From Rebecca billardiae RCC1528 (taxonomy: Eukaryota; Protista; Haptophyta), in the NCBI GenBank assembly GCA_965240325.2, contig OZ251224.1, positions 3,782,001 to 3,846,000 on the forward strand: DNA of 64,000 bases, given 5' to 3'. Position 1 is the stretch's first letter, and every line of letters starts with the position of its first letter. Made by a program: the position numbers and the translations under genes. This document shows positions 7,836 to 59,415 of the stretch, in pieces. The notes beneath the pieces are model-generated. The model made no database searches. It worked only from the letters and a program-made list of their open reading frames with translations, and had not been told where the DNA came from.

Positions 7836-8100
7836 CGCGGCCGCCGCGACACACAACTGCCCCGCGAGCTCCTTCAGCGCTCGGCCATGGAGGCCTGCAG
7901 GTGGGCGTGACTTTGAACGGGCCCGTTTCGGAATTTCAGACTGGCTGGTCGCAAACTCGGAGTGCGCGTCAGCCCTGCGCAGCTTCTCAACCCAGGACCG
8001 CCGCCGACGAGTCCGGCTCGGCGCGTGGACGGCAAGACGGCTGAAGCCGGGAATAAAAACCCAATTTGCCATCACGCAGCGCGCCAGCGGGAAATCTGCC

Positions 8101-9036
8101 ATGCGGCGCTGGACCGTCGGCGTGGTCCTCGGGGCGGCGGCGCTGGGCGCACCCGCCGCGGGCGGCTCGCAGCCCGTGCCCACGTCGTCGGTCGTCTCTA
8201 CCAGTGACGACGACTTCAGCGAAGCCGCGAGCGAGCTGACCGAGGCGCATGCACACGAGCTCGCGCACGCCATTCCACCCGACAGCAGCCGCGCGGCGGT
8301 GGGTGGCGCGGACGCCGCCCTGCTCGAAGAGCTGCAAACGCCGACGAACGACTCGGCCGAGCTCGAGGCCGCGTGGCTCGTGGACGATGCCACCGCTCAC
8401 GTCGACGAGGCGCGCACCGCCGACCTGCCCGACAGTGCTGCGCGAGCGCGCTCGCATGCGCATGCGTACGGGGCGGACAGCATGGCCGCCAGCGACGCCC
8501 CCGATGCGCGAGGGATGGACGACGGGCAGGCCGCCGTGGGAGTGCTGCCAAGAAGAGCAGACGAGCTCAATCTGGCGCTGCACTCGCTCGATGCTGCCCT
8601 CGCCGACGGGGAGGCCGACCCACAGCCGGGGCACGGCCCGGCCGAGCTGGCCGCGGCCGAGGCGGCAGCCGCCGCGGAGGAGGACCGCTGCTGCGCGGCC
8701 GAAGAGGGCGCCGAGGCGTGCGGCGAGGTTGTAGCGGCGGCGAGCGGCGTGGGTACCGCGGAGCGCGAGCAGCCCGTGTGGGCTGCGCAGGCCGCGCAGC
8801 CGGCGGGAGCCTCCGACGTGGGCGGGCCGGCAGCGGCTGAGACGGCAGCGGCAGGCGCCGAGGGCGATGTAGCGGCAGAGGTGCTGGACGCCGAGGCGCG
8901 CGAGCTCGTGGAGGGTCTGCCCCTCTCGGCTGCGACGAGCGGGCAGCCCACGCCCGCGGGCGAGCCAGGCCCGCAGCAACAGCCCGCGCCGCCACCCGCA
9001 GCGGAGCGCGCGGATGCTGCCGAGCGTGCCGAGAGC

Positions 9037-21900: not shown

Positions 21901-24900
21901 ACGACGAGACGCTCGGCCTCGTGGCCGGCGGCGCGGCGGAGGTCGAGGCGGCGGACGGCGGCGCCGACGAGCGCCAGTGCTACTGGCGCGATGACGCGTC
22001 CCTCGTGATCAACCTGCGCGCCTCTTCGCGCGTCCGGCCGGGCGACCGCGTGGGCGTGCGCGCGCGCGCGGTCGCACACACGGCGTGCGCGGCGCGCGCG
22101 GCCGGCGCGCCGTGCGCCGAGCCCGCGTTCGTCAGCGTGTCGAGCGTGGTGATCTCGGCAGACGCCCCGTGCGGCGTGGGCACGGCGTGCGCGGCGCCCA
22201 TCGCCACCGTCTCCGGCGCGCACGCCGTGCCGAGCTGCGCGCACGCAACCCTCCGCCTCGTCGGCGGCGCAGCGGGCGCGGGCTTCGTCCTTCCGAATGG
22301 ATTCTCGTGGCGGGTGTCGTCGCCCGAGCAGGCACCCGCGCCCGCGGAGACGGTGGCGGCGCTGTCGGCGGTGCTCGAGGCGCTGCCGCCGACGCAGCCC
22401 GTGCTCGAGCTCGACGCCTCCGCGCTCGGCGCCGAGGGCGGCTTCGTCTTCTCCCTCGTCCTCACCTCCGCGCTCGGCATCGCGTCCGCGCCCGCCGCGC
22501 ACGCCGTGGCGCGCGCGCCGCCGGACGGCCCGAGCGTCGAGCTGAGTGTGCCGTCGTCGGGCGCGGTGGTGCGCGCGGACGCGGCGGTGCGGCTTGGCGC
22601 GCGCGCGGACGTGTCGCCGTGCTGGCCGCCCGCGCTCTCCGCGCAGGTGCGCTTCGGCTGGGCGCTGCTCAACGTGACTCGCGACGGCGGCGGCGGCGGC
22701 GGCGGCAGCAGTGGCGGCGGCGCGGCGTTGCCTGCCGCAGCGGCGCCGCGCGTGCCCGACCTGGGCGACGCCGCGGGCTCGACGCTGCGGCTGCCGCCGT
22801 GGTCGCTGAGCGCGGGCCACGTGTACACGCTGCGCGTGCTCGCGACGATGGCCGCGGCGCCCGAGCTCAGCGCGAGCGCCGACGTCTCGCTGCGCGTGCC
22901 CTACCTGCCGCTGCGCGCCGCGCTCACGCCGAGCGCCGCGCGCGTGGGCGGCGCCGACGCGGTGCGGCTGGACGCCTCCGCCTCGGCCAACCCGAACGAG
23001 GCGGCGGGCGGCGGGCTCGCGTTTGCGTGGGCTGTGGCGCGCGCGTCCGACGGCGCGCCCGTCGAGCTCGACCTCGCCAACGCCACCTCGCCCACGCTGC
23101 TGCTGCCGCCGGGCGCGCTGCCGCACGGCGCGGCGTATCTCGTGCGCGTGCTCGTGTCCGCGCCCGGCGCGCCCGCGCTCGCGCCCGCGGCGGCGGAGGC
23201 GAGGGTGGAGGTGGCGGCGGCCCTGGCGCCGCTGCCGGCGCTGCGCCTCACGCCACTCGCCGCACGCAAGGCCGCGCCCACGTGGGAGCGCAGCAGCGGG
23301 CGCCTCGTCCTCCGCGCCACCGTCGACGCCGCCGCGGACGCCGAGCTCGCCGACGGCGCGGACGCGGAGGCGGCGCACGACTTTGCGTGGCGCGCGTGGC
23401 TCGTGGGCGCGGGCGGCGCGCGCGCGCCCGCGCCGCTCGAGCTTGCGGACGCGTCGGGCGTCACGACGACGGGCGCCGCGCAGCCCGCGCTCGCCTTCCG
23501 CAGCGGCGCGCTCAGCGCGGGCGCGACCTACGCGTTCGAGGTGCGCGCGACGCGGCGCGCGGCCGGCGGCGCGGCCGGCGGCGCGGCCGGCGGCGCGGCG
23601 GTCGCGGAGCTGGTCGTGGTGGTGAACCGGCCGCCGCACGGCGGCGGGCTGGCGGTCTCGCCGGAGCGCGGGGTCGCGGCGCTCACCGCGTTCGCGCTGC
23701 ACGCGCCCAGCTGGACGGACGACGACGCGGACGACCTGCCGCTCTCCTACGCGTTTGGGCACTCGCCGGAGCGCGGCGGCGGCGCGGCTGCGGACGAGGG
23801 CGCGGGCGCGGCGCTCGGCGCGGCGCAGCGCTCGGCGCACGCGCTCGCGCTGCTGCCCGTGGGGAACCGCACGCTGCACGTGCGCGTGGCCGACGTGCTC
23901 GGCGCGAGCGCGCACGCCACGAGCCGCGTGCGCGTGAACTCGCTCCGCGCCCACGCCGCCGCGGCCGCCGCGGCCGGCTCGGCCGATGCCGACGCAGACG
24001 ACGCGATGCGAATGGCCGTCGGCCGCGCGGGCCTGGCGCTCGAGACGGGCGACGGGACGCGCTCTCTGCAGCTGGCGAGCGCGATCGCCGCCGAGCTGGG
24101 CGGGCCCGCCGCCAACGCGAGCGCCGCCCTCGACTCCGAGGCCGCCGTCGCAATCTCGCTCCTCGAGATCAGCGCGGCCGCGGCGCGCGCGGGCGCGCTG
24201 CAGGAGGCGGCGTCGCGCGCGCACGCCGCGTTCACCTTGTCGGCGGTGGTGAGCGCCGCGCCGGCGGCGGCGCTCGCGGGTGGCGGGGTGCAGCTGAGCG
24301 CGCTGGCGCAGGCCGCGGCGATCGGCGCCGCCGCGGCACAGGGCGGCCTCGGCGCCGCCGAGGCCGCCGCCATCGTGCGCACACTGGACTCTGCTCTCCT
24401 CGCGCCGACCGACTCCCACGAGCGCGCGGAGACGGCCGCGCTCGGCGCGGCCGCGGCGTCCGCCGCGCACAACCTGGCGCGCGCGCTGCTCGCGGGCGCG
24501 GTGCCGGGCGAGCCCGCCGTGACGGCGGTCGGCGCCGCCCTCAACATCTCCGCCGTGCGCCGCGCCCCCGCCGCGCTCCTCAACGGCAGCTTTGGCGGCG
24601 CGGGCGGCGCGGGCGCACTCCGAGTGCCGCCGAGCGCGCTCGCCGCCGTCGGCACGGACGAGCTTGGCGGCGCGGGCGTGGACGTGGTGCTGTGGAGCGT
24701 GGGCCGCGCGGCGCTGCGCGCGGCGCCGGCGCACGCCAACGCCACCGCGCCGCCGCCGGCGCACGGCGCGGCGCGCACGTCCACCAGCGTCTTCTCGGTC
24801 ACGCTCGCGTCAGCGGCGAGCGGCGCCGCGCTGCGCGTCTCGGGCCTGGCTGAGCCGCTGCTGCTCGGACTGCCGCCGCTGCCGGCGGGCGCGGCGGCGC

Positions 24901-41191: not shown

Positions 41192-43901
41192 TCACGCGTA
41201 CAGCTTGTCCAGCTCCTCCTTGTGCCGCGCGACGATCTGCGTGGTGTTGGCCGCCAGGGCGCGCGCGAGAGCGCGTAAGCAGCAGCGCAGCCGCGCGCGC
41301 GCGCGGCGTCGGGGCGGCGGGCCGCGTGCGCACAGCGCTCGCTCGGTGCGCCCGGCCCGCGCCGAGCGACGCACCTGGTTGCGCTTGAGCTTCATCGCGG
41401 CCGTGAGCATGTCGTTCTCGGGCGTCCACGGATCGGCGACCAGCCCGAGCTTCTTGGGGATCTCGAAGCCGACCAGCTTGGCGGCCTTGCACGCCTCGAG
41501 CGCACTCTTGCTCACCTCCTTCACCACGTCTGCGTGCGCGCACAGCTCGTCGAAGCTGCCCGAGATGCCCTTGGACTGCGCGTACGCGCTCACGGCCGGC
41601 TCGTTGGGGCAGGCGAGCGCGATGCAGTAGCTGTGCGTCGACTTGGCGTAGCACATCGGCAGGTCGATGTAGGGCGAGTTCTTGAGCGCGTTCTCCACCT
41701 GCGGCGAACGGGCCGAGGTGGGCGGAGGGAGGGAGGTGGCAGGTGGGCGTGTGCGGCGGGGCGCGCGCGCGCGCGTGGCGGCGTGAGTGAGCGAGCGGGG
41801 GCAGACGGGCGCGCCCGTGCGGGGGAGGCGGGTCGAGGCTGTGCCGCGCGAGGCCCGCGCCACCCACGGCCCAGCCCGGCTCTCGACCCCTGCCGCCCGC
41901 GGCCCAGCCCGGCTCGGCCCGCATCCGCGCGCGCGTCCGTGCGTGCGCGGCCGCACCTTTGAGAGCGCCACGTACTCACCCTGCTGCAGCTTGACGAGGT
42001 CCTTCTTGCGGTCGATGATCATCAGCTGGCCGTCGGGCAGGATCTGGCCGATGTCGCCGGAGCAGAAGTAGCGCACGCCGTCGATCGTCGTGTACTCCGT
42101 CTCGTTCTTCTTCGCCACCTCCGGGTCGGGCTTCTCGGCATCGACCAGGTACCCCTGCGTCACCATTGGCCCGCCGATCAGGATCTCTCCGCGCGGCATC
42201 ATCACGCCCGGCTTCTCCTTGTCCGCGAAGAGGTAGCCGCCCTCGGTGTAGTCGCGCAGCCGGATGCACGCCGCGGCGGTGGGCGGGCCGACGCACGAGG
42301 TGGTGTTGTCCGCGAGGTTGGCGATCACCGTGCCCGCGCACGTCTCGGTCAGCCCGTAGCCCTGCCGCACGGGCGCGTCAAAGACCGTCTGCACGAACTT
42401 TTGCACGTCGGGCGAGAGCGGCGCCGAGCCGGTGAGCATCACGCGCACCTTGCCGCCGAGCAGCGCCTGGATCTTCTTGAAGACGAGCGCGTTGTACAGG
42501 AACCCCGCGCCGATCCCGCCGCGCTCGTAGTTCGCCACGCCGGCGCGCATCGCCGCGTTGAAGAGCGCCTTCACCAGCGGCGAGCCCTTGCTCACCTTGG
42601 CCGTGATCGCCGAGTACACCTTGTCGAGCACCGCGGGGGCGAAGACCATGATCGTGGGGTGGAGCATCGGCGCGTCGCCCACCTGCCCCTTGGCCAGCTT
42701 GACGCCCGTCGACGTGAGCGTGTGCGGCGAGCCGTACCCGATCGCGATCCCGAAGAACATCTGGCACACCTCCGCCGCCATCTCCATGATGTGCGCGAGC
42801 GGGAGGTACGCGAGGTACACGTCCTCGGGGCGGACGTACCCGCCGAGCGCGTGCTTCATGCCCGCCACCGCCGCCATGAAGTTGCCGTGGCTGATCAGCA
42901 CGCCCTTCGGCAGGCCGGTCGTGCCCGACGTGTACATGATCACCGCGATGTCCTCAGCCGTCACCTGCGCCGGCTCGACGGGCGCCGCCGCGCCGTCGAG
43001 CAAGCACTCGTCGAGCGGCTTGACGGACACGCCGCACTTGGAGAGCTTCTCGAGGTCGGACGGCTGCATGTCCGAGCTGATCGTCACGACGTACTTGAGC
43101 TGCGGGCACTGCGACGCGGCGGCCGCGAGCACCGGCAGCAGCTTCGCGTCCGCGACGACGGCGGTGGCCTTGGTCTGGTTGATGCCGTGCACCACACCCT
43201 GAGGCGGGCGGCGGCCGGCCGCGGGGCGATGGGGCGGCGCGATCGGGTTGGGCGGGCGGGCGGGCGGGCCGCGCGCGCACGGGACGGGCGGCGCACCCGC
43301 CTGCACGCGCGCGCGCGCGCGAGCGGCACGCGAGCGGCGCGCGCACCTCCTCGCCGAGCGTCGCATAGATGGTCACCACCGTCACGTCCTGCCGGAACGC
43401 GGCGAGCGCGGCGACCATCCAGTCGCGCTGCGTCTCGGCGTAGATGACGAGGCGGTCCTTGGGCTTGAGCTTCGCGAAGGACACGAGCCCCGCCGCCAGC
43501 TCGCACGCCCGCGCGTGGTACTGCGCGTACGTGAGCCACTCGTACTCGCCAAACGACAGCTTCTCAAACGAGCGCTTCGGGTTGTCCGGGTCGGGCTCGA
43601 ACTCGCGCTTGAGCAGCGGGCGGGCGCCCACGGCGAGCTTGGACGGGTATCGCTTCGCGGTGCGCTCCACCACCGCCCACACGTGCGCCAGCCCCTCGCC
43701 GGGCACGCTGACAAACTTGCCGACCGACGTGGCGCGCCAGAGCACGTTCTTCGAGTCGAGCACGCCGTACGGCTTGGACTCGGGCGGCACCTTGGGCGGG
43801 GAGAGGGCCCAGGTGACCATCATCACGACCACTGCCGTGCATGCGTACACCACGGGCGCCGCCTCAGGCGGCACGCCCAGCGCCGAGGCAACAGTGTTCA
43901 T
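41192..43901 (-). CDS. LACS: Long-chain acyl-CoA synthetase (LACS/ACSL3-4-like), ~721 aa
   Basis: Exons 43901-43347, 43198-41957, 41698-41375, 41236-41192. Motifs IMYTSGTTGLPKGV, YLPLAHI, GYGLTET, GDIG..., IIDRKKDLVKLQQGEYVALSKVE, LTAAMKLKR; N-terminal TM. Confidence 0.95.
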
Positions 43902-44234
43902 GGCGCAGCGGGGGTACTGGAGGCCGCGGCGGCAGCGGCGGCGATCGGTAAGCGCTCTCGGCCGCTCTCGCGTGGCGCTCACGCCCAGCAGGCAGCAGCC
44001 CATTGTTTTTGCTAAATTGCGCAATGGATAATATGGCCACTCGCCGCTGCGCGGCGGCGCGATGCGTGCGCGTGCGAGGTTCCGCGTCATCATTCATCAA
44101 GCTGGGGCCGCGGCGCGGCGCCGCGCCCGCCGTGGAACGGGATCGCTGGAAGTGACCGCGGAAGTTTCGAGAATCGAGGCCGATCGATTCATGGCGGCGG
44201 CCGACCACGGGGTCGCACTAGTCTACGCCGCTCA

Positions 44235-45224
44235 ATGGCGCGCCGACTCGTGAGCGCGGTGACGGGTGGCTTCTCGTACACCGGGCGGTACCTCACGCGG
44301 CGGCTTCTCGACGAAGGGCAGTCAGTTGTCAACCTCACCAGCCACCCGGCGCGGCTCACCGACTTCTCAGACGCCGAGCTGAAGCGCGTGAGCGTCCACC
44401 CGCTGGCCTTTGACGCCCCAGACCGCCTCGAGCGCGCCCTCGCGGGCGTCGACGTCCTGTACTGCACATACTTCATCCGCTTCGCGGTGGGCGACATGAC
44501 CCACGCACGCGCGGTGGACAACCTCGCCACGCTCTTCGACGCCGCGAAGCGGGCGGGCGTGCGCAAGGTCGTGCTGTCTTCGCACACGCACGCCTCCGAG
44601 GACAGCCCGTACCCGTACATCGCGAACAAGGCGCGCGGTGTGGCGGCGCTGCGCTCGTCGGGGCTCGACTACGCGGTCGTGCGCCCGTGCGGCATCTTCG
44701 GCGACAGCCCCACCGAGTCGATCCTGATCAACAACGCGGCGTGGGTGCTGCGCCGCTCGCCGCTGTTCCTGCTCGCGGGCGATGGCAACGACCGATTCCA
44801 GCCGATCCACGTGCGCGACATGGCCGCGCTGATGCACGAGCTCGGCGCGTCCCACTCCACCGGCGAGGAGCGCGACGCGTGCGGACCGGAGGCGCCCACC
44901 GCGCTCGAGTTGTTCCGCGCAATCGCGCGAGCGTGCGGCTCGCCCGCCCTCGTGGCCGCGCCGGGCCTGTCGACGCGGGTGGTCACCGCGCTCACACAGC
45001 CGCTCAACTGGTACACGGGGGACATCCTGCTCGACACGGACGACCTCGAGTTCCTGTGCGGCGGGCTGACAGTCGCGGACGACCCGCACGACCCAGCCAT
45101 CGCGAGCCGGCGCAGCCTCTTCGCTTGGCTGGAGGAGAGCGGGCCGCGGCTGGGCGAGCGCTACGTCTCCTCCTTCTCCACCTACTACGACACGACGCCC
45201 GCGCCGGCAGCGCGCGCCAAATGA
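44235..45224 (+). CDS. NAD(P)-binding atypical SDR / NDUFA9-like epimerase-dehydratase
   Basis: Intronless 329 aa. Rossmann VTGGFSYTGRYL, PYIANK (YxxxK), VVRPCGIFG, FQPIHVRDMA. Confidence 0.88.
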   Translation: MARRLVSAVTGGFSYTGRYLTRRLLDEGQSVVNLTSHPARLTDFSDAELKRVSVHPLAFDAPDRLERALAGVDVLYCTYFIRFAVGDMTHARAVDNLATLFDAAKRAGVRKVVLSSHTHASEDSPYPYIANKARGVAALRSSGLDYAVVRPCGIFGDSPTESILINNAAWVLRRSPLFLLAGDGNDRFQPIHVRDMAALMHELGASHSTGEERDACGPEAPTALELFRAIARACGSPALVAAPGLSTRVVTALTQPLNWYTGDILLDTDDLEFLCGGLTVADDPHDPAIASRRSLFAWLEESGPRLGERYVSSFSTYYDTTPAPAARAK

Positions 45225-45683: not shown

Positions 45684-48600
45684 TCATTGATGTGGGGCAT
45701 CATCAGGTGGTGCTGCCAGTGCCCGCCGACTGAAGCGCGAGTGCTGAGTAGTCGTGCGGCGGTGGCGAGCCGACTGAAGCAGCGCGTCGAGAAGCGCGCG
45801 CCCGACCCGCGGCGCCGGTGGTGCGGCGAGGCACTCCGGCTCGACGCCGGCCACGCACTGCCGCGCGGCAATCAGCCCGGCAATGCCCGCCCCGCGGGCC
45901 CCGCCGCCAGCCCGCGAGTCCTCGCTCGCCCCGCCCTCACTGGAGTCCGGGCCAGAGTCCGGGTCGAAGACGTCAAGGTTGCGCCGCGCGAGCTCGTAGA
46001 CTGCCGGGAGTCGGGACGAGAGCTGCGCGCGCATGGCGGGCAGAGCGCGGACGAAGCGGACGAGCGCGGCGCGCAGCGCGCCCGGCGTGGTGAAGTTGCG
46101 GATCAAGTGCTCCTCCGCGCGCCCCGCCCCGTACAGGTCCGCCGCGAGCTCGACGAACTTGGCCTGGCTCGCCAGCGCCAGCCCCGGCGTGCCGCGCGCC
46201 GCGCACAGCACGAGCAGGTGCATGAACCCGGACAGCACGCCGTCGAGGTGGCCGAGGAGCGCCGAGCTCTGGATCGGCTCGTAGTGCGCTCCTCTGCAGA
46301 AGAGGCGCACGCGCACGCGCGGGCACCGCCTCGCCAGGTGTGCGCGCACATCCGCCAGGTAGTGCGACTCGCTCGCGTACCCACGGCCGCCGCGGGTGCG
46401 CGGCGCCGGCATGCGGAAGGGCCGCTGGTCGTGCGCGAGCAGTAGGTAGCTGACGCCCTCGCCGTCGGGCCGGGCGCTCAGCGTACTCGCGGCGGCGCAG
46501 AGCTCGGATGCGAAGAGCGCCGCGAGGGCAGGGAGCTCCGCCGCCGCCGCCGCCGCGTCGTACAGGTACAAGTTGACGCCGAGCACCGCGCCGCGCCCTG
46601 CACCCCGCGCGCTCGCGGCGGCACGCGCATCCGCGAGCCACGCCGCGTCCGCGGGCGGCGGTCCGCGCGGGTCTGGGCGGATGAGGAAGGCCATGTCAAA
46701 GACATGCCGCACGCGCGCGCGCGCCGAGGCGCGCGGCGCGACGAGCGCGCGCGCCGCTGCGGCCGCCGGCGCGGCCGGGCTCGCGCTGTCGCACGCGCCG
46801 CACTCCGCCCGCGCCGCGCGGCGGGTGAGGTCCGCCACCACGGCGCACGAGGAGATGGCGCGCGGCCGCAGGCACGCGCTCGACGGGTAGTGGCCGATGA
46901 GCTGCGCTCGGCCGGGCACGGGCGTGTAGGAGAAGGCCACGACGGTGAAGGGGACGCCGTGCGTGGCGGCCTCGCGCGCCCAGGCCCGCCAGCGCGGCTC
47001 TCGCGCCGAGTCATAACGGCCGTCGATCACGTCGGTCGCCAGGATGAAGAGGGCGCCGATCGTGCGCCACTGCGCGGCGGGCACCGCGCGGGACGAGCTG
47101 GCCGGCGGGCCCACGGTGCGCAGGCCGAGGGGCAGCGGCGGAGTGAGGCTGCCTCTCTTGATGTCGCACCGCCAGCAGAGCAGCTCAGCACGCGGGCAGC
47201 GCGCACGCAGCTCTTGCGCCAGCGCCCACACGACCGCGTGGTCGCCCACGGAGAACCACGGGCCGTCCCAAACGGTCGGCAGCCCGATGCCAAGCGCGCC
47301 CCGCGCGCAGAGCGCGCCGCCGGGCGGCGGGTCGGGCGGCATTGGCACCGGCGGCAGTCCTGCCGCGGACGACGCTCGCGCCAGCGCCCGCGTGCCCGCC
47401 GACGCCGAGCTGTTGGCCGCCGGTGGCGGCGCAGCGCACATTCCGCCGATGTTGTCGCCGGGCGCGGAGCCAGCCGCTCTCGGCGCCGCCAACGCCGCTC
47501 TCGCCGCCGCCGGCGCTTCCGCCACCGCCGCCTCCACCAGTGTCGGCGAGGCCTCTGCGCTGCCGCCCGCTGTCGGTGCCGGCTGCACGACCGGCCAGAC
47601 AGCCGCCTCCGGGAAGAGCACCTCGCGAAGCGGCTTGCGCGGCGAGGTGGCGACGTCGAGCTCGGCGGGGAGATGCCCGACCGCGACGAGCATCGTGATC
47701 AGGTCGCCCTCCGGGATGCCCACCTCGCGGCGGAGATCGCGATCTCGCTGCGGCGGCACGTCCCAGTTGAGCGGACACGCGCCCAGCCCGACCGAGTGCA
47801 GCGCGAGCAGCACAGACTGCGCGAACATGCCGCCGTCGATCCAGCCCTGGTACCGCTCCGTGGGCATCAGCATGTAGTGCTCGACCGACGCGGCCAGGAC
47901 CAGCACCACCGGCGCCGTGTGCCCGAACCCGCGGTTCCCGCTCTGGTGCCGCAGCGCCGCCGCACGCGCCGCCGCGCTGCTCAGGTAGTACACACGCGCA
48001 CCCTGCCGGTTGCACACGGACGGCGACGCCTCGATTGCGCGGCGCACCGCCTCGACGATGAGGCCGGGCTCGACGGGGGCGTGCGCGTCGAACTGGCGGA
48101 TCGAGTGCCGCGATGCGAAGAAGGGCGCCAGGTCCACGCCGGCCGATGGAAGCGCCGACTCGCCGCCGCTGCCGTCACCGCTGCCGCCGCTCGCGCCCGC
48201 GCCGGCGTCTGCGTCCGGCGGGAGCGGCGGCAGCCGGCCGACGGCGCGGTGGACGTCCTCGCGGCGCACACGGCGCGCGCCGCCTGGTGGGAACGCCGAA
48301 GCAAACGCCTCCGACCCCCAGTCCTGCGCCCGCCTCTCCCACGACCGCAGCAGCTTCGCCGCCTTTGGCGGGACAGCCGCGCCCCGCGCCTTGTGCGCGT
48401 GCGCATATGAGGTCAGTGCGTCGCGGACGCTGAGCAGGACTGCGACGTCAGTCCGCCGGAGCTTTCCGGTGCTGCTGCCGGCGCGGGCGAGCAAGGCACC
48501 GGCGGCCGTTTGCATCTTGTCCAGCGCGCCCGAGCGCACGCCAAACCCGAGCTTCATGTCCGGCATGCTCAGCCCTTTCTCAATGTCGTGCTGCCAGCGG

Positions 48601-49133
48601 CGCAGCCATGCGCGCAGCATCGCTGGCGTCTGCAGATGCACGGGGGGGGGCGTCGTGGGCGCGTACGCGTCGTAGCGTGCGCGGTCAAATTCGAACAGGG
48701 CGGCGGTGGGGCTGAGCGCGCCTGTGCCTTGCGCCGTGCCCGTGCTCGCGCTCAGCGCAGGGCCGCTGCCCCTCCTCCCGGCGACACGCGACGCGTTGAG
48801 ACGCGCGGCGAGCAGCTCGCGCGCCTCGCGCTGCTGCGCGTCCCACTCGGCGTAGCTGAGCAGGCCGAGCGAGCCAGTGCGATAGGCGCGAGTGTACTCG
48901 GCAATGCGCGCAGCGCTCGACGCGTCCGGATCGTCTGCTGCCGTGCCCGTCCACACGCCGCGCGGGCGGTACGGGCCGAGCCCGCACGGACTTGGTGGCG
49001 GTGGCGGCACGGCCGCCGCGAGCCGACGGGTGGTGCCGGAAGTGGGCGGCAGTGAGAGAGCGGGCAGGAGCCGGACGAGCAGCAGGGTCAACGCCGAGCC
49101 AAACAGCGTGCCGCCGCCGAACGCTGCATACAT
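45684..49133 (-). CDS. Membrane-anchored fusion of a nitroreductase-family domain and a polysaccharide pyruvyltransferase (WcaK/CsaB-like) domain
   Basis: N-terminal hydrophobic anchor. Nitroreductase motifs HDIEKGLS..GFG, SRHSIRQF, SPSVCNRQ, IDGGMFAQSVLLALHSVGLGACPLNW, VAVGH. Pyruvyltransferase-like motifs SVGDHAV, TDVIDGRY, DMAFLIRP, LAHDQR, SGFMHL...GTP...SQAKF. Start could be 49196. Confidence 0.8.
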   Translation of the reverse strand: MYAAFGGGTLFGSALTLLLVRLLPALSLPPTSGTTRRLAAAVPPPPPSPCGLGPYRPRGVWTGTAADDPDASSAARIAEYTRAYRTGSLGLLSYAEWDAQQREARELLAARLNASRVAGRRGSGPALSASTGTAQGTGALSPTAALFEFDRARYDAYAPTTPPPVHLQTPAMLRAWLRRWQHDIEKGLSMPDMKLGFGVRSGALDKMQTAAGALLARAGSSTGKLRRTDVAVLLSVRDALTSYAHAHKARGAAVPPKAAKLLRSWERRAQDWGSEAFASAFPPGGARRVRREDVHRAVGRLPPLPPDADAGAGASGGSGDGSGGESALPSAGVDLAPFFASRHSIRQFDAHAPVEPGLIVEAVRRAIEASPSVCNRQGARVYYLSSAAARAAALRHQSGNRGFGHTAPVVLVLAASVEHYMLMPTERYQGWIDGGMFAQSVLLALHSVGLGACPLNWDVPPQRDRDLRREVGIPEGDLITMLVAVGHLPAELDVATSPRKPLREVLFPEAAVWPVVQPAPTAGGSAEASPTLVEAAVAEAPAAARAALAAPRAAGSAPGDNIGGMCAAPPPAANSSASAGTRALARASSAAGLPPVPMPPDPPPGGALCARGALGIGLPTVWDGPWFSVGDHAVVWALAQELRARCPRAELLCWRCDIKRGSLTPPLPLGLRTVGPPASSSRAVPAAQWRTIGALFILATDVIDGRYDSAREPRWRAWAREAATHGVPFTVVAFSYTPVPGRAQLIGHYPSSACLRPRAISSCAVVADLTRRAARAECGACDSASPAAPAAAAARALVAPRASARARVRHVFDMAFLIRPDPRGPPPADAAWLADARAAASARGAGRGAVLGVNLYLYDAAAAAAELPALAALFASELCAAASTLSARPDGEGVSYLLLAHDQRPFRMPAPRTRGGRGYASESHYLADVRAHLARRCPRVRVRLFCRGAHYEPIQSSALLGHLDGVLSGFMHLLVLCAARGTPGLALASQAKFVELAADLYGAGRAEEHLIRNFTTPGALRAALVRFVRALPAMRAQLSSRLPAVYELARRNLDVFDPDSGPDSSEGGASEDSRAGGGARGAGIAGLIAARQCVAGVEPECLAAPPAPRVGRALLDALLQSARHRRTTTQHSRFSRRALAAPPDDAPHQ

Positions 49134-50734
49134 CGCAGCACGCCGCGGGCGCGGCGGCGCGCTCGCCTCCCTGAGGCGTGATGTGAGCATCGTCATCGAT
49201 GCTGCTCGAGTTGACAGCACACCGTGCGCAGTGATGGACGCCACGCGCACACCCGGAAGGTTCTGCCAATATGAGATTCACGGGCCGCGCAGGGATCGGC
49301 TAGTGGCTGGCCCTCTGCCCACACTGGGGCGCCCTAGGGGGTGCCCAGTCTGCCGACTCGGCTCAAACTCGATGATCTCGAATTGCAAGGCAGTGCACTG
49401 CTGGTACCTGGGACCACCCCACAGTGTTGGGCTTGTATGCTGTCGGCAATGGCATACCCCCGCCCCCTCTGGAGGCGGGCTGTCCACAGCGGAGTGGTGT
49501 CAAGGCACTCGGTGTATCGGTCAGTGGTTTGAGGTTGGGTGAGGGTGGTGGTTGGTTGGGGGCTGGCCAGGGTAGGGCTGGAGGCTTCGGCCGCCAGTCT
49601 GATCACCCGGAGCCCGTTATAAATGGGAATTTAAAAACAGCTCAGCAGCAGGCGACGAGATTACTAAAGTAGTATTGGCTGTGTGCGTCTCTTATTCGTA
49701 GTAAACTGTATTACAGTTTACCCATATACTAAGATAAGAGACGCACATGTACCCCCATACAGCTCGGGCTCGTGTCGAGTGAGGTGTCAGCTGCTGGGCT
49801 CCGACGACGGCTCCGCTACTCGCGCGAGACGCTCTCCGCCAATAAGCGCGATACCGGCCCGCCCACCCCGCGTTGAAGCGCGCTGGTGCACGAGCTCGCA
49901 TGTTGAGCGCCATGGACGCTCTACGTAGGGCATCGGCTCGCTCGCTCGCGCCTGTGGTGCCGCGCGCGCACGCGCGCGCGCATGCTCACAGCTCAAGAGC
50001 CGCCGCCCGACAGGGCACATGCACGCACGCGAGAGCACTACCTTGATGCTGACGAGCGTGGTGGCTCGCATCTCGCAAGATGAGACGATTCCGATGCTTG
50101 CTTTCACCGCCTTGGAGCCCTCTCGCGCGTGGCCACCACAAGCGCCCGCGTGCGCACGCAGCGAGCAGCGCAGCGAAACTCGACGCGTGTGCTCTTTGCG
50201 CGCTGCCATCCATCTCCCGACGCAGAGGGCTCGAGCCTGTGCGTGCGCCTTGCCCTGCAGATATGCGCATGCGCGCTGAACAGATCCTTGGGGGCGCCGA
50301 GCAGTCTACGCCCACGCCGCCGACTGATGAGGGCGGTGCAGGTTGGGCGAGCAGCTTGAGAGTTGGCCTCGCGCCGCCGCTGCAGAGCCCAAGTCTCCTG
50401 GGCGGCAGCCCTGGCGGCTCTGGGGGCGCGCACGGCGCGCGCTCGTGCGGTCGTGGATGCGGCCGTGGAGGTCGAAGCCGCATCTGCGTAGCCGCGAGAG
50501 AGCGCGCGGCGCCCTCTCACGCGGCGCGCCTCGCTCGCGTCACGTTCGCCTCGTCTCAGGCCAGCGCGTACGCGCACGCGTGCGCGAGCGCCAGCCGTGC
50601 GCGCAGCCAACTGTCATCAGCTCGCGCGGGCGCGGGCCTGTATCATCATATTGCGGTCCGCGCCGCCAACCCGCCGCCGAGCCCCGCCTCAGCCGCCCTC
50701 AGGCCCGCGCGACGAAATCCAGGCGGTGATCGAA

Positions 50735-52631: not shown

Positions 52632-55600
52632 TCAACGTTCAGCAGCATGCGTCGCCGACTCTGACACCGCCGCGTGCTCCTCGTCCACGTACATGAGCCT
52701 CGCCGTGCCGAGCAGCTGCTCGGGCAGCTCATCGGCGGTCGTGCCCTCGAGCAGCAAGGCGAGGTCGACGACGAGCGCGCGCGCCGCGCCCTTGACGATG
52801 CGGAGCACGCCCGTCGCGACGGACGACGAGCCCACGTCGATGTCCACCTCGACGTACTGCCCGGGGCTCGTGTGGTACGTCGTGTGCAGCGCGCGGCCGA
52901 TGATGGCGGGCGTCTTGCCCACCGCGCGCCGCACCATCCAGTTGCCCTCCTCGATGCTGGGGATCAGCTTGAAGATCTCGTTGCGCTCCTCGTCCGCGCT
53001 GCACGCAAACTTCTCGAGCCGCGCGAGCAGCGCCGGGTCCGACGGGTTGGCGCGGTCCACCGAGAAGTAGAGCACGAGCGAGAGGCACGGCGAGCCCGGC
53101 AGCTGGAAGTTCACGATCAGCTGGTAGTTGCTCGGCGCTTCGAGCCGCGCGGCGCAGCCGTCTCGCTGCGCCACGTGCTCAAGCGGGTGCGCCGAGCGCA
53201 GCAGGTCGACCGCGCTGAGCTGCATCATCGCGCCGGTCGCGGGCACCTTGACGCGGTCGTCGAGGTACGTCGCGCCGCGCAGCTTGAACGTCTGTGGCTC
53301 GGGCTCGTCCCAGCAGTTCTCGTCGTCGGCGTGGCGCGCGCGCCGCAGCGTGCCCGCGCGCTCGATGACCGACGCCGGCAGCGACGACGGCGCGCGGCGC
53401 GCGGCGAGCGCGCTCGTGCGCGCGGACGTGCGCGTGGAAGTGTTGCGCAGCAGCGGCGACGCGGCGCTCAGGGCGGCGGGGAGGTGCGGGGACGGCGGCA
53501 TCGTGCGATCCGACGGCGCCGCGCCCGCGCCCGCCGCCGCCGCGCGCGGCGACCCCGCCGCCTCCGCGCCGCCACCCTCAGCCACGCCCGCCGGCTCCGG
53601 CTCGGCGGACGCGAGCGCCAGTCCGCGCGCGAGCGAGACGCCGATCTCGCTCTCGAGCGGCTCGTCGTCGTGTGCGTACTCGAGCTGCTGCTGCTCGGCG
53701 TAGTAGCGCAGCCCGCGCAGGTTCGCCACGGCGAACCGCTGGTACCGCCGGCGCAGCAGCGCGTTCGCGCCGATCCAGCCGTGCGGGTGCAGGTCCAGCA
53801 CGTGGGAGACAACGCAGTGCGCGCCCGCGCCGCACGGCGCGCCGCCGGGCGCGCCGCCGGCGGCGTCCGCGGCGGCTGCGCCGTCCTCGACGCGGCGCTT
53901 GGCCGGGCGGATGGTGATCGCCGAGCCGCGCACCTCCGCGCGCACCGCGTCGCCCACGAGCGGGCAGCAGCGGTGCGTCGTCGAGAGCGAGACGACCGTG
54001 TACGAGCCCTCCGCCTCGCGGCGCCAGTAGCGCAGGAGACAAGCGTCGCGCCGCTGCGCCAGCAAGGGACCGAACACGAGGGTGGGGAAGCGGGTGTACA
54101 CGACGTCGGAGTGGCGGTCGAGCGAGTCGACGACGACGCCGCCGTCGTACGCGATGTCCCACTCGTACCGCGCCGGACCGAGCCCCATCACCATGTTGAA
54201 GACGTCCTCGGGAGAGGCGCGCACGGCGGTGGTCGCGCGCACGCAGCCGGTGCGCGCAGCGTCGTGGCACGGCCGCAGCGGCAGCAGCGCGCTGCAGAGG
54301 AGGCTGGCCGGAAGGCCGATGAGCAGGGCGAGGAGCGCGGCGGACAGCCCCGTCGTCGGGCCCCACACCGCGCACACCACCGCGACGCACGCGACGGCGA
54401 GCGCGAGCACGCCAGACGCCGCCGCCTCCGCCAGGCCCGCGCCGCCACCCAGCACGCCCAGCACGCGCCGCCGAAGGAGCCCTCCGCCAGCCACTCCGCC
54501 AGCCACGCGCTCGCCGCCGAGGAGGCTGCCGATGCCGCCGCCCTGCTCCTCGTAGAAGAGGCGCACGCCGTCGCTCACCTCGTCCAGCCGCCACCGCTCG
54601 CTCGAGCCATCCGGCGCCTCCAGCACCGGCTCTGGCAGCGCGCTGTGCGCAGGTGGCACGTCGCCGCACGAAGGCGCGCGCCCGCTCACGGCCAACGAGC
54701 GCGCGCCCCCGCCTCCCGCCTGCGCGCAGGCCAACGCAGCGCGCGGCGCGTGCGCGGACGCGGCGGTGGCGGAGGCCGTCGGGAGCGCGCCCAGGCCCGC
54801 GCCCATCGGGGGCGTGGCCGGCGGTGCACCGCCGATGGCGCCACCGAGGCTGCCAGGTCCCGCTCCACCCGCCGCGCCGCCACCGCAGCGGCTCGATGCG
54901 CTGGCTGAGCCGCTCGCGCCCGCGCCGGCCCCCATCGCCTTGGCCGCGCCGGCGGCGGTGGCGGACGCGGACGCGGCGGCGGCCAGGGTGACGGGCGGGG
55001 GAGGCGGCACGCACCCGTGCGCGAGGTCGTCCAGCGTGGCCGAGCTCTCGAGCAGCAGCCGCAGCACGCGCACCCACTCGTCGCGGTTCGGTTTGTCCGC
55101 GCACGCAAGCATCACAAGGGTCGCGCCCGAGCCCGCGACGAGGGAGAAGGGGTGGATGGTGCCGTGGCCGTGCTCGCGCTCGGTCTTGCGGTCGCGCAGC
55201 GCGTCGAGCGGGACCACGCTCACCCCGCGGCCGCCGAGCGCGATGGTGCTCTCCTCGTTGTGCTTCACAAACGTGAGGCTGAGCTCGTCGCCCTGCCCCT
55301 TGAGCACCACCGGCCGGCGCTTCCACAGGTGCAGGTAGGTCGAGCGCTTGAGCACGACGCCTGAGAGGTGGGTGCCGCCGGATGGGCTCACGTGCACGGT
55401 GAGGGCGCCGGTCGGCTCGATGATCTCGGAAGCCACTGACTCTGCGCGGCTCCTGCCGCCCGCGGTCGCTGGCGCGTCCGCGGCGGGCGCGGATGCGGCG
55501 CCCGGGCCGTGGCCGCCCCGAGCGGCGGCGAGCAGCGCGGAGGCAGCCGCACTGGCGGCGGCGGCAGCAGCGCGCGTGGGGCTCGGCGTGGCGCTCGAAC

Positions 55601-55655
55601 CGTCGCCCAGCGGACCGTTCGCCGACGGCGCCGTCGCTGTCGGAGACGGAGCCAT
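52632..55655 (-). CDS. EDR2-like lipid-binding protein (PH + START + DUF1336)
   Basis: PH (SGVVLKRSTYLHLWKRR...NRDEWVRVL). START (RYEWD...VVDSLDRHSDVVY...RDACLLRYWRREAEGSY...VRAEV). DUF1336/EDR2-C (FKLRGATYLDDRVKVPA, VNFQLPG, FKLIPSIEEGNWMVRRAVG, YVEVDIDVGSS, ELPEQLLG). Confidence 0.9.
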   Translation of the reverse strand: MAPSPTATAPSANGPLGDGSSATPSPTRAAAAAASAAASALLAAARGGHGPGAASAPAADAPATAGGRSRAESVASEIIEPTGALTVHVSPSGGTHLSGVVLKRSTYLHLWKRRPVVLKGQGDELSLTFVKHNEESTIALGGRGVSVVPLDALRDRKTEREHGHGTIHPFSLVAGSGATLVMLACADKPNRDEWVRVLRLLLESSATLDDLAHGCVPPPPPVTLAAAASASATAAGAAKAMGAGAGASGSASASSRCGGGAAGGAGPGSLGGAIGGAPPATPPMGAGLGALPTASATAASAHAPRAALACAQAGGGGARSLAVSGRAPSCGDVPPAHSALPEPVLEAPDGSSERWRLDEVSDGVRLFYEEQGGGIGSLLGGERVAGGVAGGGLLRRRVLGVLGGGAGLAEAAASGVLALAVACVAVVCAVWGPTTGLSAALLALLIGLPASLLCSALLPLRPCHDAARTGCVRATTAVRASPEDVFNMVMGLGPARYEWDIAYDGGVVVDSLDRHSDVVYTRFPTLVFGPLLAQRRDACLLRYWRREAEGSYTVVSLSTTHRCCPLVGDAVRAEVRGSAITIRPAKRRVEDGAAAADAAGGAPGGAPCGAGAHCVVSHVLDLHPHGWIGANALLRRRYQRFAVANLRGLRYYAEQQQLEYAHDDEPLESEIGVSLARGLALASAEPEPAGVAEGGGAEAAGSPRAAAAGAGAAPSDRTMPPSPHLPAALSAASPLLRNTSTRTSARTSALAARRAPSSLPASVIERAGTLRRARHADDENCWDEPEPQTFKLRGATYLDDRVKVPATGAMMQLSAVDLLRSAHPLEHVAQRDGCAARLEAPSNYQLIVNFQLPGSPCLSLVLYFSVDRANPSDPALLARLEKFACSADEERNEIFKLIPSIEEGNWMVRRAVGKTPAIIGRALHTTYHTSPGQYVEVDIDVGSSSVATGVLRIVKGAARALVVDLALLLEGTTADELPEQLLGTARLMYVDEEHAAVSESATHAAER

Positions 55656-57837: not shown

Positions 57838-59415
57838 ATGCGCATACGGCTCGGGGTGGTGGCCGCATTGGGGCTGTGCGCGGCGTTCACGCTCGTCGTG
57901 CTGCCTCAGCTCCTCCTCGTCGATCCACTCGATCGTGTCGGCGCGCATGTCGCCATGGAGCGGCAACGTCAGCTCTTTGCTCACAAGGCCGCCAGAGCAC
58001 GCAAGCCGTGGCGGCCAGGCGCTGGCAGGGCAGCCCTGCAACGCCCGGCCGCGCTCGCAACCTCCGCGGTGCCGGTGGAGCCGTCGGCCACGATGTCGTC
58101 ATCGCCCCCGCCGTCCCAGGTGGCGCTCTCTCCGCAGTCCGCGGCGGCGTCCCAGGCTGCGCTGCGAGCAGAGCCGATTGCTGCCAGCCCGGCCGCTGAC
58201 CCGGCTGCGCCGAATCCTCGCGCCGAGGAGGTGTCGAGGTGGCGCGTGGCCGTGGCCGCAGTTGTGCGCGCCGATGGCGACGCGTTGCTCGAGTGGGTCG
58301 AGTACCATCGTCTCCTCGGCGTGGGCCACTTCTTTCTCATGTCCAACGACTGCACCGACAGCGGGGACGACTCGCTCCGAGACTTGAGGCCACACATAGA
58401 GGCGGGCGTCGTGGAGGTGGGCTGGGAGTACTGGTGCACGCCGCGGAGCAGGGTGGACGAGGACGAGGCGCGCTCGAGGCTCGGGCGCTGGGCCGCCAAC
58501 TCCTCCGCGTGGCTGGCCTTCCTCGCCGCCGACGAGTTCCTCGTCGTGCGCGAGCACAGCCAGCTCGTCGGCGACGTGCTCGACGCATTCCCTGGCTTCG
58601 ATGCCGTGGCCGCGCCGGTGCGCGTCTTCGGCAGCTCGGGGTTCCGCAGCCGGCCGAACGGCTCGGTCGTGGCGAACTACGTGCTCCATGCCTCGCCGCG
58701 CGCGCCGCTCGTGCGCGCGCTCGCCACGCCCGTCGTCCGCCCAACGGAGTGCCTGCGCATTGCCAAGGGGCAGTGCGGACGCTTCAGGTGCCAGGCCGAT
58801 GCGGCCACGGCTGACGGCGCCGTGCCACGGCCACGGCCGCACTGCGGTTGCACAGTGTCAGCGGACAAGCGGCGGTGCGTCAACGACGCGGCCTCGTCCG
58901 CCGTGCCCGCGGCTGAGCCCAGCGCCTCGCCGCTCTGGGTGAACAAGTACCTCACCAAGAGCGAAGCGGAGTGGAAGCGGCGGCAGGAGCGCGGGTTAGT
59001 GCCGTCGCGCTGGCTCGAGCTCGCGTCGTCGCAGGCGCTCTCGGAGCAGCCCGACTACCACGCGGTCCAAAGCGTGCGGCTGCGGCTGCAGCGCCTGAAA
59101 GCAGCGCGCGCAGCGGCTTCTGCGCCGGGTGACGCCGGCGCTGAGGATGCCGCACGCGCGGAGGACTTCCTCCGCCAGCTCTTGCTCAGCAGGGATGTGC
59201 ACGCGCCCCAGGACGGGAGCGCGCGACGTGCGACGTCGGCCGCTGCATCGTCGAGCGCTGGTGCCGCAAGCGCAGGCGGCGCCGCCTCCACATTTTACGG
59301 CGACGACCTCGTGCGCGATCACACAGGTAAGCTTCGCAAAGCGACCTGGCGCGAGAAGGTACGGCGTGCACAGCACGAGCACCTCAACGCCGCTCGTAAG
59401 CACGAGACGAAATAA
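57838..59415 (+). CDS. Type II membrane glycosyltransferase-like protein (GT92/DUF23 or GT2-related)
   Basis: N-terminal TM and stem, then LLEWVEYHRLLGVGHFFLMSNDCTD, WLAFLAADEFL, VFGSSG and VNKYLTKSEAEW. Confidence 0.8.
   Translation: MRIRLGVVAALGLCAAFTLVVLPQLLLVDPLDRVGAHVAMERQRQLFAHKAARARKPWRPGAGRAALQRPAALATSAVPVEPSATMSSSPPPSQVALSPQSAAASQAALRAEPIAASPAADPAAPNPRAEEVSRWRVAVAAVVRADGDALLEWVEYHRLLGVGHFFLMSNDCTDSGDDSLRDLRPHIEAGVVEVGWEYWCTPRSRVDEDEARSRLGRWAANSSAWLAFLAADEFLVVREHSQLVGDVLDAFPGFDAVAAPVRVFGSSGFRSRPNGSVVANYVLHASPRAPLVRALATPVVRPTECLRIAKGQCGRFRCQADAATADGAVPRPRPHCGCTVSADKRRCVNDAASSAVPAAEPSASPLWVNKYLTKSEAEWKRRQERGLVPSRWLELASSQALSEQPDYHAVQSVRLRLQRLKAARAAASAPGDAGAEDAARAEDFLRQLLLSRDVHAPQDGSARRATSAAASSSAGAASAGGAASTFYGDDLVRDHTGKLRKATWREKVRRAQHEHLNAARKHETK

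Follow-up and report, generated by a model that had tools for sequence, protein, structure and literature searches.

What would an alga do with a flavoenzyme and a pyruvyltransferase joined in a single polypeptide? The question is raised by a gene on the minus strand of a 64,000-nucleotide stretch of the haptophyte Rebecca billardiae RCC1528 (GenBank assembly GCA_965240325.2, contig OZ251224.1, positions 3,782,001 to 3,846,000), here called the window, whose own numbering is used throughout. The coding sequence (45684..49133, minus strand; 1149 codons plus the stop at 45684-45686 in the list of open reading frames, ORFs) needs no intron and specifies a protein with an N-terminal hydrophobic segment, a nitroreductase half, an Ala/Pro-rich linker and a C-terminal half resembling the polysaccharide pyruvyltransferases (PS_pyruv_trans). 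Our answer, held with a confidence slightly on the favourable side of even, is that the protein is a membrane-anchored bifunctional enzyme adding 1-carboxyethyl (lactyl) ethers to a glycan. The argument is built from the two halves, from the company that their homologs keep in bacteria and from the few polysaccharides for which both gene cluster and structure are on record.

The open frame is not a product of chance. Base composition is ~73% GC, which we estimate to give ~0.016 stops per codon, and the probability of 1149 open codons is then ~e^-18 by our own arithmetic. Taken in blocks of 50 codons, GC content at third codon positions (GC3) stays within 0.78-1.00 from residue 1 up to ~1100, with 0.82-0.84 in the Ala/Pro linker; it is 0.63 in the final 50 codons and 0.45-0.69 flanking the frame on either side.

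The nitroreductase half consists of a helical N-extension typical of an extended nitroreductase family (residues 140-299, 48237..48716), a Gly/Ser/Asp-rich insert (residues ~311-330, 48144..48203) and a flavin mononucleotide (FMN) nitroreductase core (residues 331-515, 47589..48143), the core being recognized by PF00881, by Foldseek and by conserved motifs. Nitroreductase PF00881 scores 59.1 bits on the whole protein and 61.2 bits on the module, with a cut-off of 23.5. Residues 140-515 used as a query retrieved >135 proteins, nearly all bacterial, of 320-375 amino acids (aa), with query coverage up to 97-98%. The extension of ~160 residues is present family-wide in the bacterial members together with its HDIEKGLS...GFG motif, which starts at residue 182 (position 48590) in the window protein and of which HDIEKGLS occupies 48567-48590. 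Among 41 aligned members (alignment A2) there are 26 invariant columns, which include H-x-x-E-K-G-L, then F-G, the R-x-S-x-R of SRHSIR, SVCNR and E-R...G, and the window protein has 26/26. The conserved motifs of the core in this alignment are SRHSIR, SPSVCNRQ, GNRGFG and ERYQGWIDGGMF. In an AlphaFold2 (AF2) model this half has a predicted local distance difference test score (pLDDT) of 88.6, with five helices, mostly >85, followed by the nitroreductase core. The insert is disordered in the model (pLDDT <50), is a gap in every bacterial row of the alignment and is restricted to the clade of the window protein.

Foldseek matches the core to FMN nitroreductases with template modelling (TM) scores, normalized to the target, of 0.7-0.8. 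The R-x-S-x-R motif and the fold match both support a half that would bind FMN and be redox-active. No solved structure found in profile and fold searches matches the helical N-extension. The matches to the core include the enone reductase CLA-ER (4qlx) and the cyclodipeptide oxidase AlbA (8uc3, 9exv), which share the FMN fold and illustrate that it is able to reduce or form C=C bonds, but they are without the 160-residue helical extension of the window protein and their substrates are unrelated.

Beyond the linker (residues 516-601, 47331..47588), for which no homology was found, lies the PS_pyruv_trans-like domain with a GT-B fold (residues 602-1056, 45966..47330), assigned through PF04230, profile relatives and the AF2 model. 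The direct Pfam call is borderline: PF04230 gives 28.0 bits on residues 600-1060 alone and 23.5 within the whole protein, with a cut-off of 25.3. The assignment is made instead because of homology to undoubted members through intermediates. A profile of two sequences, the window protein and a stand-alone homolog, P0122, was searched against 1.84 billion representative proteins and found 336 relatives, most of ~410-450 aa; those that were checked score up to 88 bits with PF04230 over the full profile length. One of them, P0133, is matched at E 3.5e-19 and itself spans positions 3-279 of the 280 of PF04230 at 65.7 bits. Alignment of the eukaryote-like clade with classical pyruvyltransferases by hhalign is weak (probability 22%), and a search of the ESM Atlas provided leads only (0.79).

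The AF2 model of this half (pLDDT 89, predicted TM score 0.90) is a GT-B-like two-domain fold. Yeast Pvg1p (5ax7) aligns with it over 265 residues at Z 18.0, fourth in VIA, a match tied with those of GT-B glycosyltransferases and epimerases, and Foldseek against the Protein Data Bank (PDB) finds generic GT-B proteins only (TM 0.4-0.47); fold alone therefore cannot assign the family. The same 5ax7 is the top sequence-profile match in the PDB, a weak one (E 0.06). The low-complexity C-terminal tail (residues 1057-1149, 45687..45965) has no family match and aligns, loosely, with the tail of P0122 only. A sequence-only reading of this DNA had described an intronless frame with an N-terminal anchor, a nitroreductase domain with an H.IEKGLS...GFG extension, an Ala/Pro linker and a WcaK/CsaB-like domain with GFMH where RMH or RLH is usual. 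The single uninterrupted frame, the one hydrophobic segment at the N-terminus, the scores and profile relatives given above and the comparison of the GFMH site given below agree with that description in every part.

Why the two activities should be joined is suggested by bacterial genomes. A set of 81 non-duplicate bacterial loci was assembled, 78 from species-representative genomes of at least 10 phyla plus a Noviherbaspirillum metagenome-assembled genome (L003) and a Roseateles-like contig (L005), and their ORFs were scored by purpose-built hidden Markov models. A pyruvyltransferase gene adjoins the nitroreductase gene in 48/81 loci and lies within 8 kb in 65/81. It is immediately downstream on the same strand in 34 of the 81, immediately upstream on the same strand in nine, adjacent and divergent in five and elsewhere within 8 kb in 17; it was not found in 16, four of which have almost no flank. 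Low-scoring neighbor ORFs that were checked in Pfam all proved to be PF04230 (8/8, 70-153 bits). In L003 and L005 the PS_pyruv_trans gene is 8-17 bp downstream of the nitroreductase gene, and both pairs lie inside Wzx/Wzy- or exosortase-type exopolysaccharide (EPS) loci. An independent metagenome set has the pair adjacent or fused in 30/78 loci. The pyruvyltransferase partners come from at least three subfamilies. Bacterial fusions of FrhB_FdhB to PS_pyruv_trans (P0219, P0221, P0231) have, as in the window protein, an N-terminal flavoreductase and a C-terminal pyruvyltransferase, but they differ from it in the reductase fold, in being bacterial and in having no anchor. Other bacterial PS_pyruv_trans domains are fused to a Wzx-type flippase (Polysacc_synt_3), GT2 or GT4 (P0158, P0199, P0208, P0244, P0258).

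What such a pair might make is best seen in Escherichia coli. Lactyl groups occur in E. coli O58, O124, O146, O69 and O150 (PMC7685785), and the O150 polysaccharide carries a 4-O-[(S)-1-carboxyethyl] group on N-acetylglucosamine, according to a title cited in PMC7685785. The clusters of O124/O164, O150 and O69 were reached through a low-GC cyanobacterial probe. That of O124/O164 has the order wzx, FrhB-like gene, PS_pyruv_trans; that of O150 has rfbBDAC, nitroreductase family protein, wzx, PS_pyruv_trans (L093, NZ_CP065152.1); and that of O69 has rfbBDAC, FrhB-like gene, wzx, PS_pyruv_trans (L174, NZ_CP027442.1). With 270 bits on the family profile (positions 19-337) and the motif HRIEKAFSLPKPKLGFG, the O150 nitroreductase is of the same family as the N-terminal half of the window protein, with which it shares 25% identity (E 8e-31). 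Its gene is present in 8/5426 complete E. coli genomes; the context examined was that of H7 (strain FEX669), where the gene is part of the O150 cluster, and at matching positions the remaining seven copies show 99.6% identity. The wzx gene of strain FEX669 is annotated as frameshifted. The E. coli O146 cluster was not found with probes L042, L008 and L073 or with the O150 nitroreductase DNA, whose matches were confined to O150 genomes.

The pyruvyltransferases of O69 and O150 share 48% identity, and neither locus carries the reductase type of the other, a natural swap of the reductase slot between a nitroreductase and an FrhB-like protein that may set the stereochemistry of the lactyl group. 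Genetic evidence comes from O124, in which a frameshift in wfeP abolishes glucolactilic acid and turns O124 into O164 (PMC7685785). The O124/O164 pyruvyltransferase is split into two coding sequences (CDS) in three genomes and intact in three (L092, TUM18780, 8166-9301), in agreement with that frameshift, and from the split CDS in L092 we infer that wfeP is the PS_pyruv_trans gene. The O150 pair (WP_097316999.1 and WP_060773444.1) resembles the window protein in combining a nitroreductase of the extended family with a PS_pyruv_trans protein without the arginine discussed below. It differs in consisting of separate cytoplasmic proteins with wzx between their genes and in having no anchor, Pro-rich stem or linker, and its pyruvyltransferase (~380 aa) is of another subfamily than the C-terminal half. 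E. coli O124, together with Shigella dysenteriae 3 and S. boydii 17, and E. coli O69 also combine PS_pyruv_trans with a flavoprotein gene and have a lactyl ether as product, but the reductase is FrhB/FdhB-like, with the fold of the F420-hydrogenase beta subunit, in place of the nitroreductase fold.

Klebsiella capsules tell a similar story. Of 79 K types, K22 and K37 alone have a 'nitroreductase', accompanied by a type-specific pyruvyltransferase; K8, K22, K37 and K66 have pyruvyltransferase genes yet capsules without pyruvate ketal, and in K66 a 'coenzyme F420 hydrogenase' adjoins the pyruvyltransferase (PMC4616057). The K22 polysaccharide contains 4-O-[(S)-1-carboxyethyl]-glucuronic acid, and the title of the report speaks of 'another glycan' with this sugar (Parolis 1988). 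The nitroreductase type thus accompanies an (S) group in O150 and K22, as far as the titles of the structural papers go, and those for O69 and O146 read '(R)- and (S)-'; the lactyl group of O69 is probably (R) by its cited title. Configuration and reductase type can then be set side by side across the two species. The lactyl group of O124 we take to be (R) and the earlier glycan alluded to for K22 to be that of K37, and these four or five cases suggest that the type of reductase sets the configuration. The sequence-only reading had stated that this nitroreductase subtype often neighbors pyruvyltransferase genes in EPS and capsule loci and had seen in the fusion a Rosetta-stone link to, among other options, a 'reduced substituent'. 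The adjacency in 48/81 loci and the metagenome count bear out the former, and O150, O69, O124, K22 and K37, by tying pyruvyltransferase and flavoreductase to lactyl ethers, bear out the latter.

The reaction that we propose would begin in the C-terminal domain, which would transfer enolpyruvyl from phosphoenolpyruvate (PEP) to a sugar hydroxyl. The enol ether would not close to a cyclic ketal and would instead be handed to the N-terminal FMN domain, which would reduce its C=C bond with reduced flavin, ultimately at the expense of reduced nicotinamide adenine dinucleotide (phosphate), NAD(P)H, to give the lactyl ether. MurA and MurB act in this manner in succession, the first making an enolpyruvyl ether from PEP and the second reducing it to a lactyl ether in a flavin-dependent reaction. 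The likeness to the window protein is in the two-step chemistry; there is no homology and the folds differ, those of the window protein being GT-B and nitroreductase, and no EPSP_synthase or MurB family match was found in it with Pfam and NCBIfam. What each half catalyzes, which acceptor is used, what this organism makes with the protein and how the protein is oriented are all inferred in this way. A more specific form of the proposal, which we regard as tentative and put somewhat below an even chance, is that the nitroreductase family comprises (S)-setting enolpyruvyl-ether reductases, that FrhB-like proteins set (R) and that the eukaryote makes lactyl ethers by one anchored polypeptide. The reductase slot would then be a swappable stereochemical switch, with the nitroreductase of O150, K22 and K37 giving (S) and the FrhB-like protein of O69 and O124 giving (R).

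The active site of the C-terminal half bears on this proposal. In CsaB, mutagenesis and docking place R148, R306, H308 and K328 in the PEP site, and R306 of CsaB, equivalent to R337 of Pvg1p, is a predicted PEP ligand (PMC10435577). The window protein shares with Pvg1p, CsaB of Paenibacillus alvei and WcaK a GT-B-like fold and keeps the equivalents of R148, H308 and K328 (R758, H972 and K992) as well as the invariant D813. The equivalent of R306 is F970, in F970-M971-H972 (46218..46226), which stands at the R-x-H of characterized ketal-pyruvyltransferases; R-M-H is found at this site in 56/64 relatives. The C-terminal half is therefore not filed as a ketal-pyruvyltransferase, and it is further unlike these enzymes in its fusion to a flavoenzyme and in an expected product other than a cyclic ketal. 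The Arg of R-x-H is absent throughout the clade of the window protein (nine members), which retains the other 16 positions that are nearly invariant in the subfamily.

Absence of this Arg recurs elsewhere. The pyruvyltransferases of E. coli O124/O164, O150 and O69 and that of the eukaryote-like contig L088 read 'TDSFH', and cyanobacterial pyruvyltransferases of ~360 aa adjoining a nitroreductase read 'TNxFH'; none has the Arg. By its sequence, the clade of the window protein has lost it independently, inside a GRMH...YQDKFEGL subfamily. An enzyme without the Arg may well be active, since the lactyl group genetically depends on wfeP. Whether it marks the chemistry is another matter: many bacterial pyruvyltransferases linked to a nitroreductase keep the Arg, so its loss is not a reliable mark and may be taken as a hint of lactyl chemistry.

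The fusion is not confined to the window. A metagenome scan with the nitroreductase clade alignment found a second one, L094 (JGI Ga0314693_10001702, GC 62%), in which a single frame, already open at the contig end and closed by a stop at 2413 (at least 804 aa), encodes a nitroreductase core, a different linker of ~50 aa and a pyruvyltransferase domain with GLMH. Its identity to the window protein is 53% in the nitroreductase core and 29-37% in the pyruvyltransferase, and the fusion thus exists, as judged from the reading frames, in at least two diverged sequences. A whole-length word search with the window protein found only P0001 and missed L094, and a metagenome scan with an alignment of the C-terminal half gave no match. 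Two further eukaryote-like loci have the halves close together. In L001 (43-5438), a 1364-aa ORF with a Nucleotid_trans (GT77-like) match and a pyruvyltransferase-like region (28% identity, E 2e-18) ends 60 nt before the nitroreductase ORF in a different frame; the arrangement may reflect a frameshift, a very short intron or two genes paired as in a bicistron. In L088/L089 a PF04230 gene begins 72 nt beyond the gene for the nitroreductase protein P0001. P0001 (L088 397-3057) has ~370 extra residues with a weak PAN-domain match (18.5 bits, below cut-off). Stand-alone proteins corresponding to the pyruvyltransferase half also exist, namely P0123 and P0122, the latter with a charged tail and a hydrophobic segment of its own.

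How well does the proposal stand against other explanations? The C-terminal half could be an ordinary ketal-pyruvyltransferase whose product is a pyruvate ketal, the fused nitroreductase serving some other substituent, the supply or recycling of a cofactor, or regulation. It does retain D813, which is invariant, and all but one of the four predicted PEP-site residues (R758, H972, K992); R-x-H is kept in many bacterial pyruvyltransferases adjacent to a nitroreductase, two of the best-scoring bacterial matches (P0133, P0134) are not linked to a nitroreductase, and pyruvate ketals are a documented modification in algae and yeast, namely in red and green algal galactans and in Schizosaccharomyces pombe (PMC6801904). 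We nevertheless regard this as unlikely: where structure and locus are both known, in O150 and K22/K37, polysaccharides with the pair have a lactyl ether and lack pyruvate ketals; the fusion recurs in L094, and adjacency so close and so common speaks against an unrelated role. It is more doubtful still that the gene specifies two separate cooperating proteins, through internal initiation, an unrecognized intron, proteolysis in the linker or an assembly error. Each half has stand-alone homologs (P0122 for one, P0002 and P0003 for the other), the halves lie in separate frames in L001 and L088, and a 100-codon linker would be open by chance ~20% of the time at this GC content by our own arithmetic. 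With no stop between the halves, however, a ribosome reading the nitroreductase part continues into the next; the linker has coding-like GC3, and L094, whose linker is different, also has the halves in this order in a single frame. Least probable of the three, if by little, is a catalytically dead pyruvyltransferase half that would only bind glycan or membrane on behalf of an active flavoenzyme, or the converse arrangement. The replacement by Phe of the predicted PEP ligand, R306 in CsaB and R337 in Pvg1p, is what suggests it. The O124 enzyme is without the same Arg, yet its frameshift abolishes the lactyl group; the clade of nine is strongly conserved, with the other 16 nearly invariant positions kept, and both halves would be under selection, judging by GC3 and conservation.

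Several observations weigh against the lactyl-ether proposal itself. To the retention of the Arg in many nitroreductase-linked enzymes can be added that the C-terminal half belongs to the GRMH...YQDKFEGL subfamily, not to that of the lactyl-associated pyruvyltransferases of E. coli; that its closest relative, P0122, is stand-alone with its own anchor; and that the gene preceding those for P0133, which falls in the group sister to the eukaryote-like clade, and P0134, which does not, is one for a flippase or an ABC-ATPase. The 'nitroreductase' of Klebsiella is so named by annotation. No assay of this nitroreductase family or of a partner pyruvyltransferase appears in the searchable literature, and we know of no lactyl ether from this organism.

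A last objection concerns topology, which is important since the cytosol is where PEP, NAD(P)H and nucleotide sugars are found. The single hydrophobic segment, a signal anchor (residues ~4-26, 49056..49124), is the sole Kyte-Doolittle window >1.5 outside the folded domains; the homologs P0122 and P0001 likewise begin with a charged tail followed by a hydrophobic stretch. The segment and these N-termini would fit the secretory-pathway targeting proposed in the sequence-only reading. A Pro-rich stem and clade-specific region (residues ~27-139, 48717..49055), common to the eukaryote-like homologs, connects it to the nitroreductase half; the BLASTP match to P0001 begins at residue 52 and the tblastn match to L001 at residue 73. 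The position of the start codon matters here. The maximal open frame (45684..49250, minus strand) has GTG at its 5' end with an in-frame stop just upstream of 49250, and besides the ATG at 49133 that gives 1149 aa there are in-frame ATGs at 49196 and 49190. Their possible 5' extension of 21 codons (49134..49196) would encode the Arg-rich tail MTMLTSRLREASAPPRPRRAA, with a GC3 of only 0.67. Starting at 49196, five Arg precede the hydrophobic segment in the classic layout of a type II Golgi protein, which P0122 and Pvg1p also have; starting at 49133, no charge lies ahead of it and Arg lies behind, which would favor the alternative of a cytosol-facing enzyme. A type II orientation, with the catalytic part in the lumen of the Golgi or endoplasmic reticulum, is somewhat favored by these features. 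Pvg1p is a type II Golgi protein, and S. pombe must import PEP into the Golgi for it. A lumen-facing version of the window protein would, to its disadvantage, have no obvious source of reducing equivalents for FMN.

Where the two halves came from can be judged from two trees, both quick searches with midpoint roots. In the nitroreductase tree five eukaryote-like sequences form one clade (support 100) on a long branch whose bacterial sister is not resolved. In the pyruvyltransferase tree the nine such sequences group together (100), and their clade falls inside a bacterial subfamily (98). A bacterial origin of both halves is likely from these sequences, because the family spans many bacterial phyla and is matched by a handful of eukaryote-like contigs. 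Of the horizontal acquisition of a bacterial pair that the sequence-only reading proposed, the bacterial ancestry is likely, whereas the two halves may or may not have come together. The genomic contexts of P0133 and P0134, two of the best-scoring bacterial matches to the C-terminal half, have no nitroreductase, and joint acquisition was accordingly dropped as a conclusion. Cyanobacterial and planctomycete members of the same wide pyruvyltransferase subfamily do adjoin a nitroreductase. Fused and stand-alone forms are mixed within the eukaryote-like clade, where the window protein is sister to the stand-alone P0122 (99), so fusion or fission has happened more than once or paralogs coexist.

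The surroundings of the gene are those of a eukaryotic nuclear genome. Pfam identifies a Ser/Thr kinase (Pkinase; 5238-8393, minus strand), a START+EDR2_C protein (52632-55655, minus strand), a GT92/GT2_4-like protein (57838-59415, plus strand) and a split AMP-binding gene as eukaryotic neighbors. Contamination by bacterial DNA was rejected: the flanking genes are eukaryotic and the GC3 of the fusion gene, 0.88, matches the 0.83-0.95 of its neighbors, which places the fusion among the eukaryote's own nuclear genes, in a genome of very high GC content. The AMP-binding gene consists of two overlapping ORFs on the minus strand (41192-43366 and 42954-44093), which match profile positions 81-384 and 16-86 of PF00501 and look like one gene broken by an intron or frameshift. 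A 329-aa NAD(P)-binding/epimerase-like ORF (44235-45224, plus strand; NAD_binding_10 64 bits, Epimerase 50 bits) is convergent with the fusion gene and stops 459 nt short of its 3' end. Positions 16001-22000, with a GC content of 0.83 and a GC skew of -0.35 to -0.45, lie within an open frame of 4625 codons and are probably a low-complexity stalk. An Rfam scan of the 64-kb window gave no match.

Lactic-acid ethers are carried by many bacterial surface polysaccharides, among them those of E. coli O58, O69, O124, O146 and O150 and of Klebsiella K22 and K37. The nosturonic acid of Nostoc is another example. To our knowledge, the enzymes that make lactyl ethers outside peptidoglycan have genetic support only, and the searchable literature does not state the role of the 'nitroreductase family protein' in hundreds of EPS, capsule and O-antigen loci. 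The fusion, taken with the exchange of the reductase slot between O150 and O69, turns that role into a specific and cheaply testable question. The sequence-only interpretation is largely borne out and can now be narrowed to one proposed product, the fusion being probably a new eukaryotic, anchored variant of a bacterial two-gene lactyl-ether module, and the analysis documents a small eukaryote-like clade of bacterial-type glycan-tailoring enzymes without the residue thought to bind PEP. If the proposal is true, the fusion would be a ready-made construct for proof of the pathway in vitro, and an acidic decoration of sugars other than pyruvate ketal, sulfate or uronic acid would be predicted in this alga.

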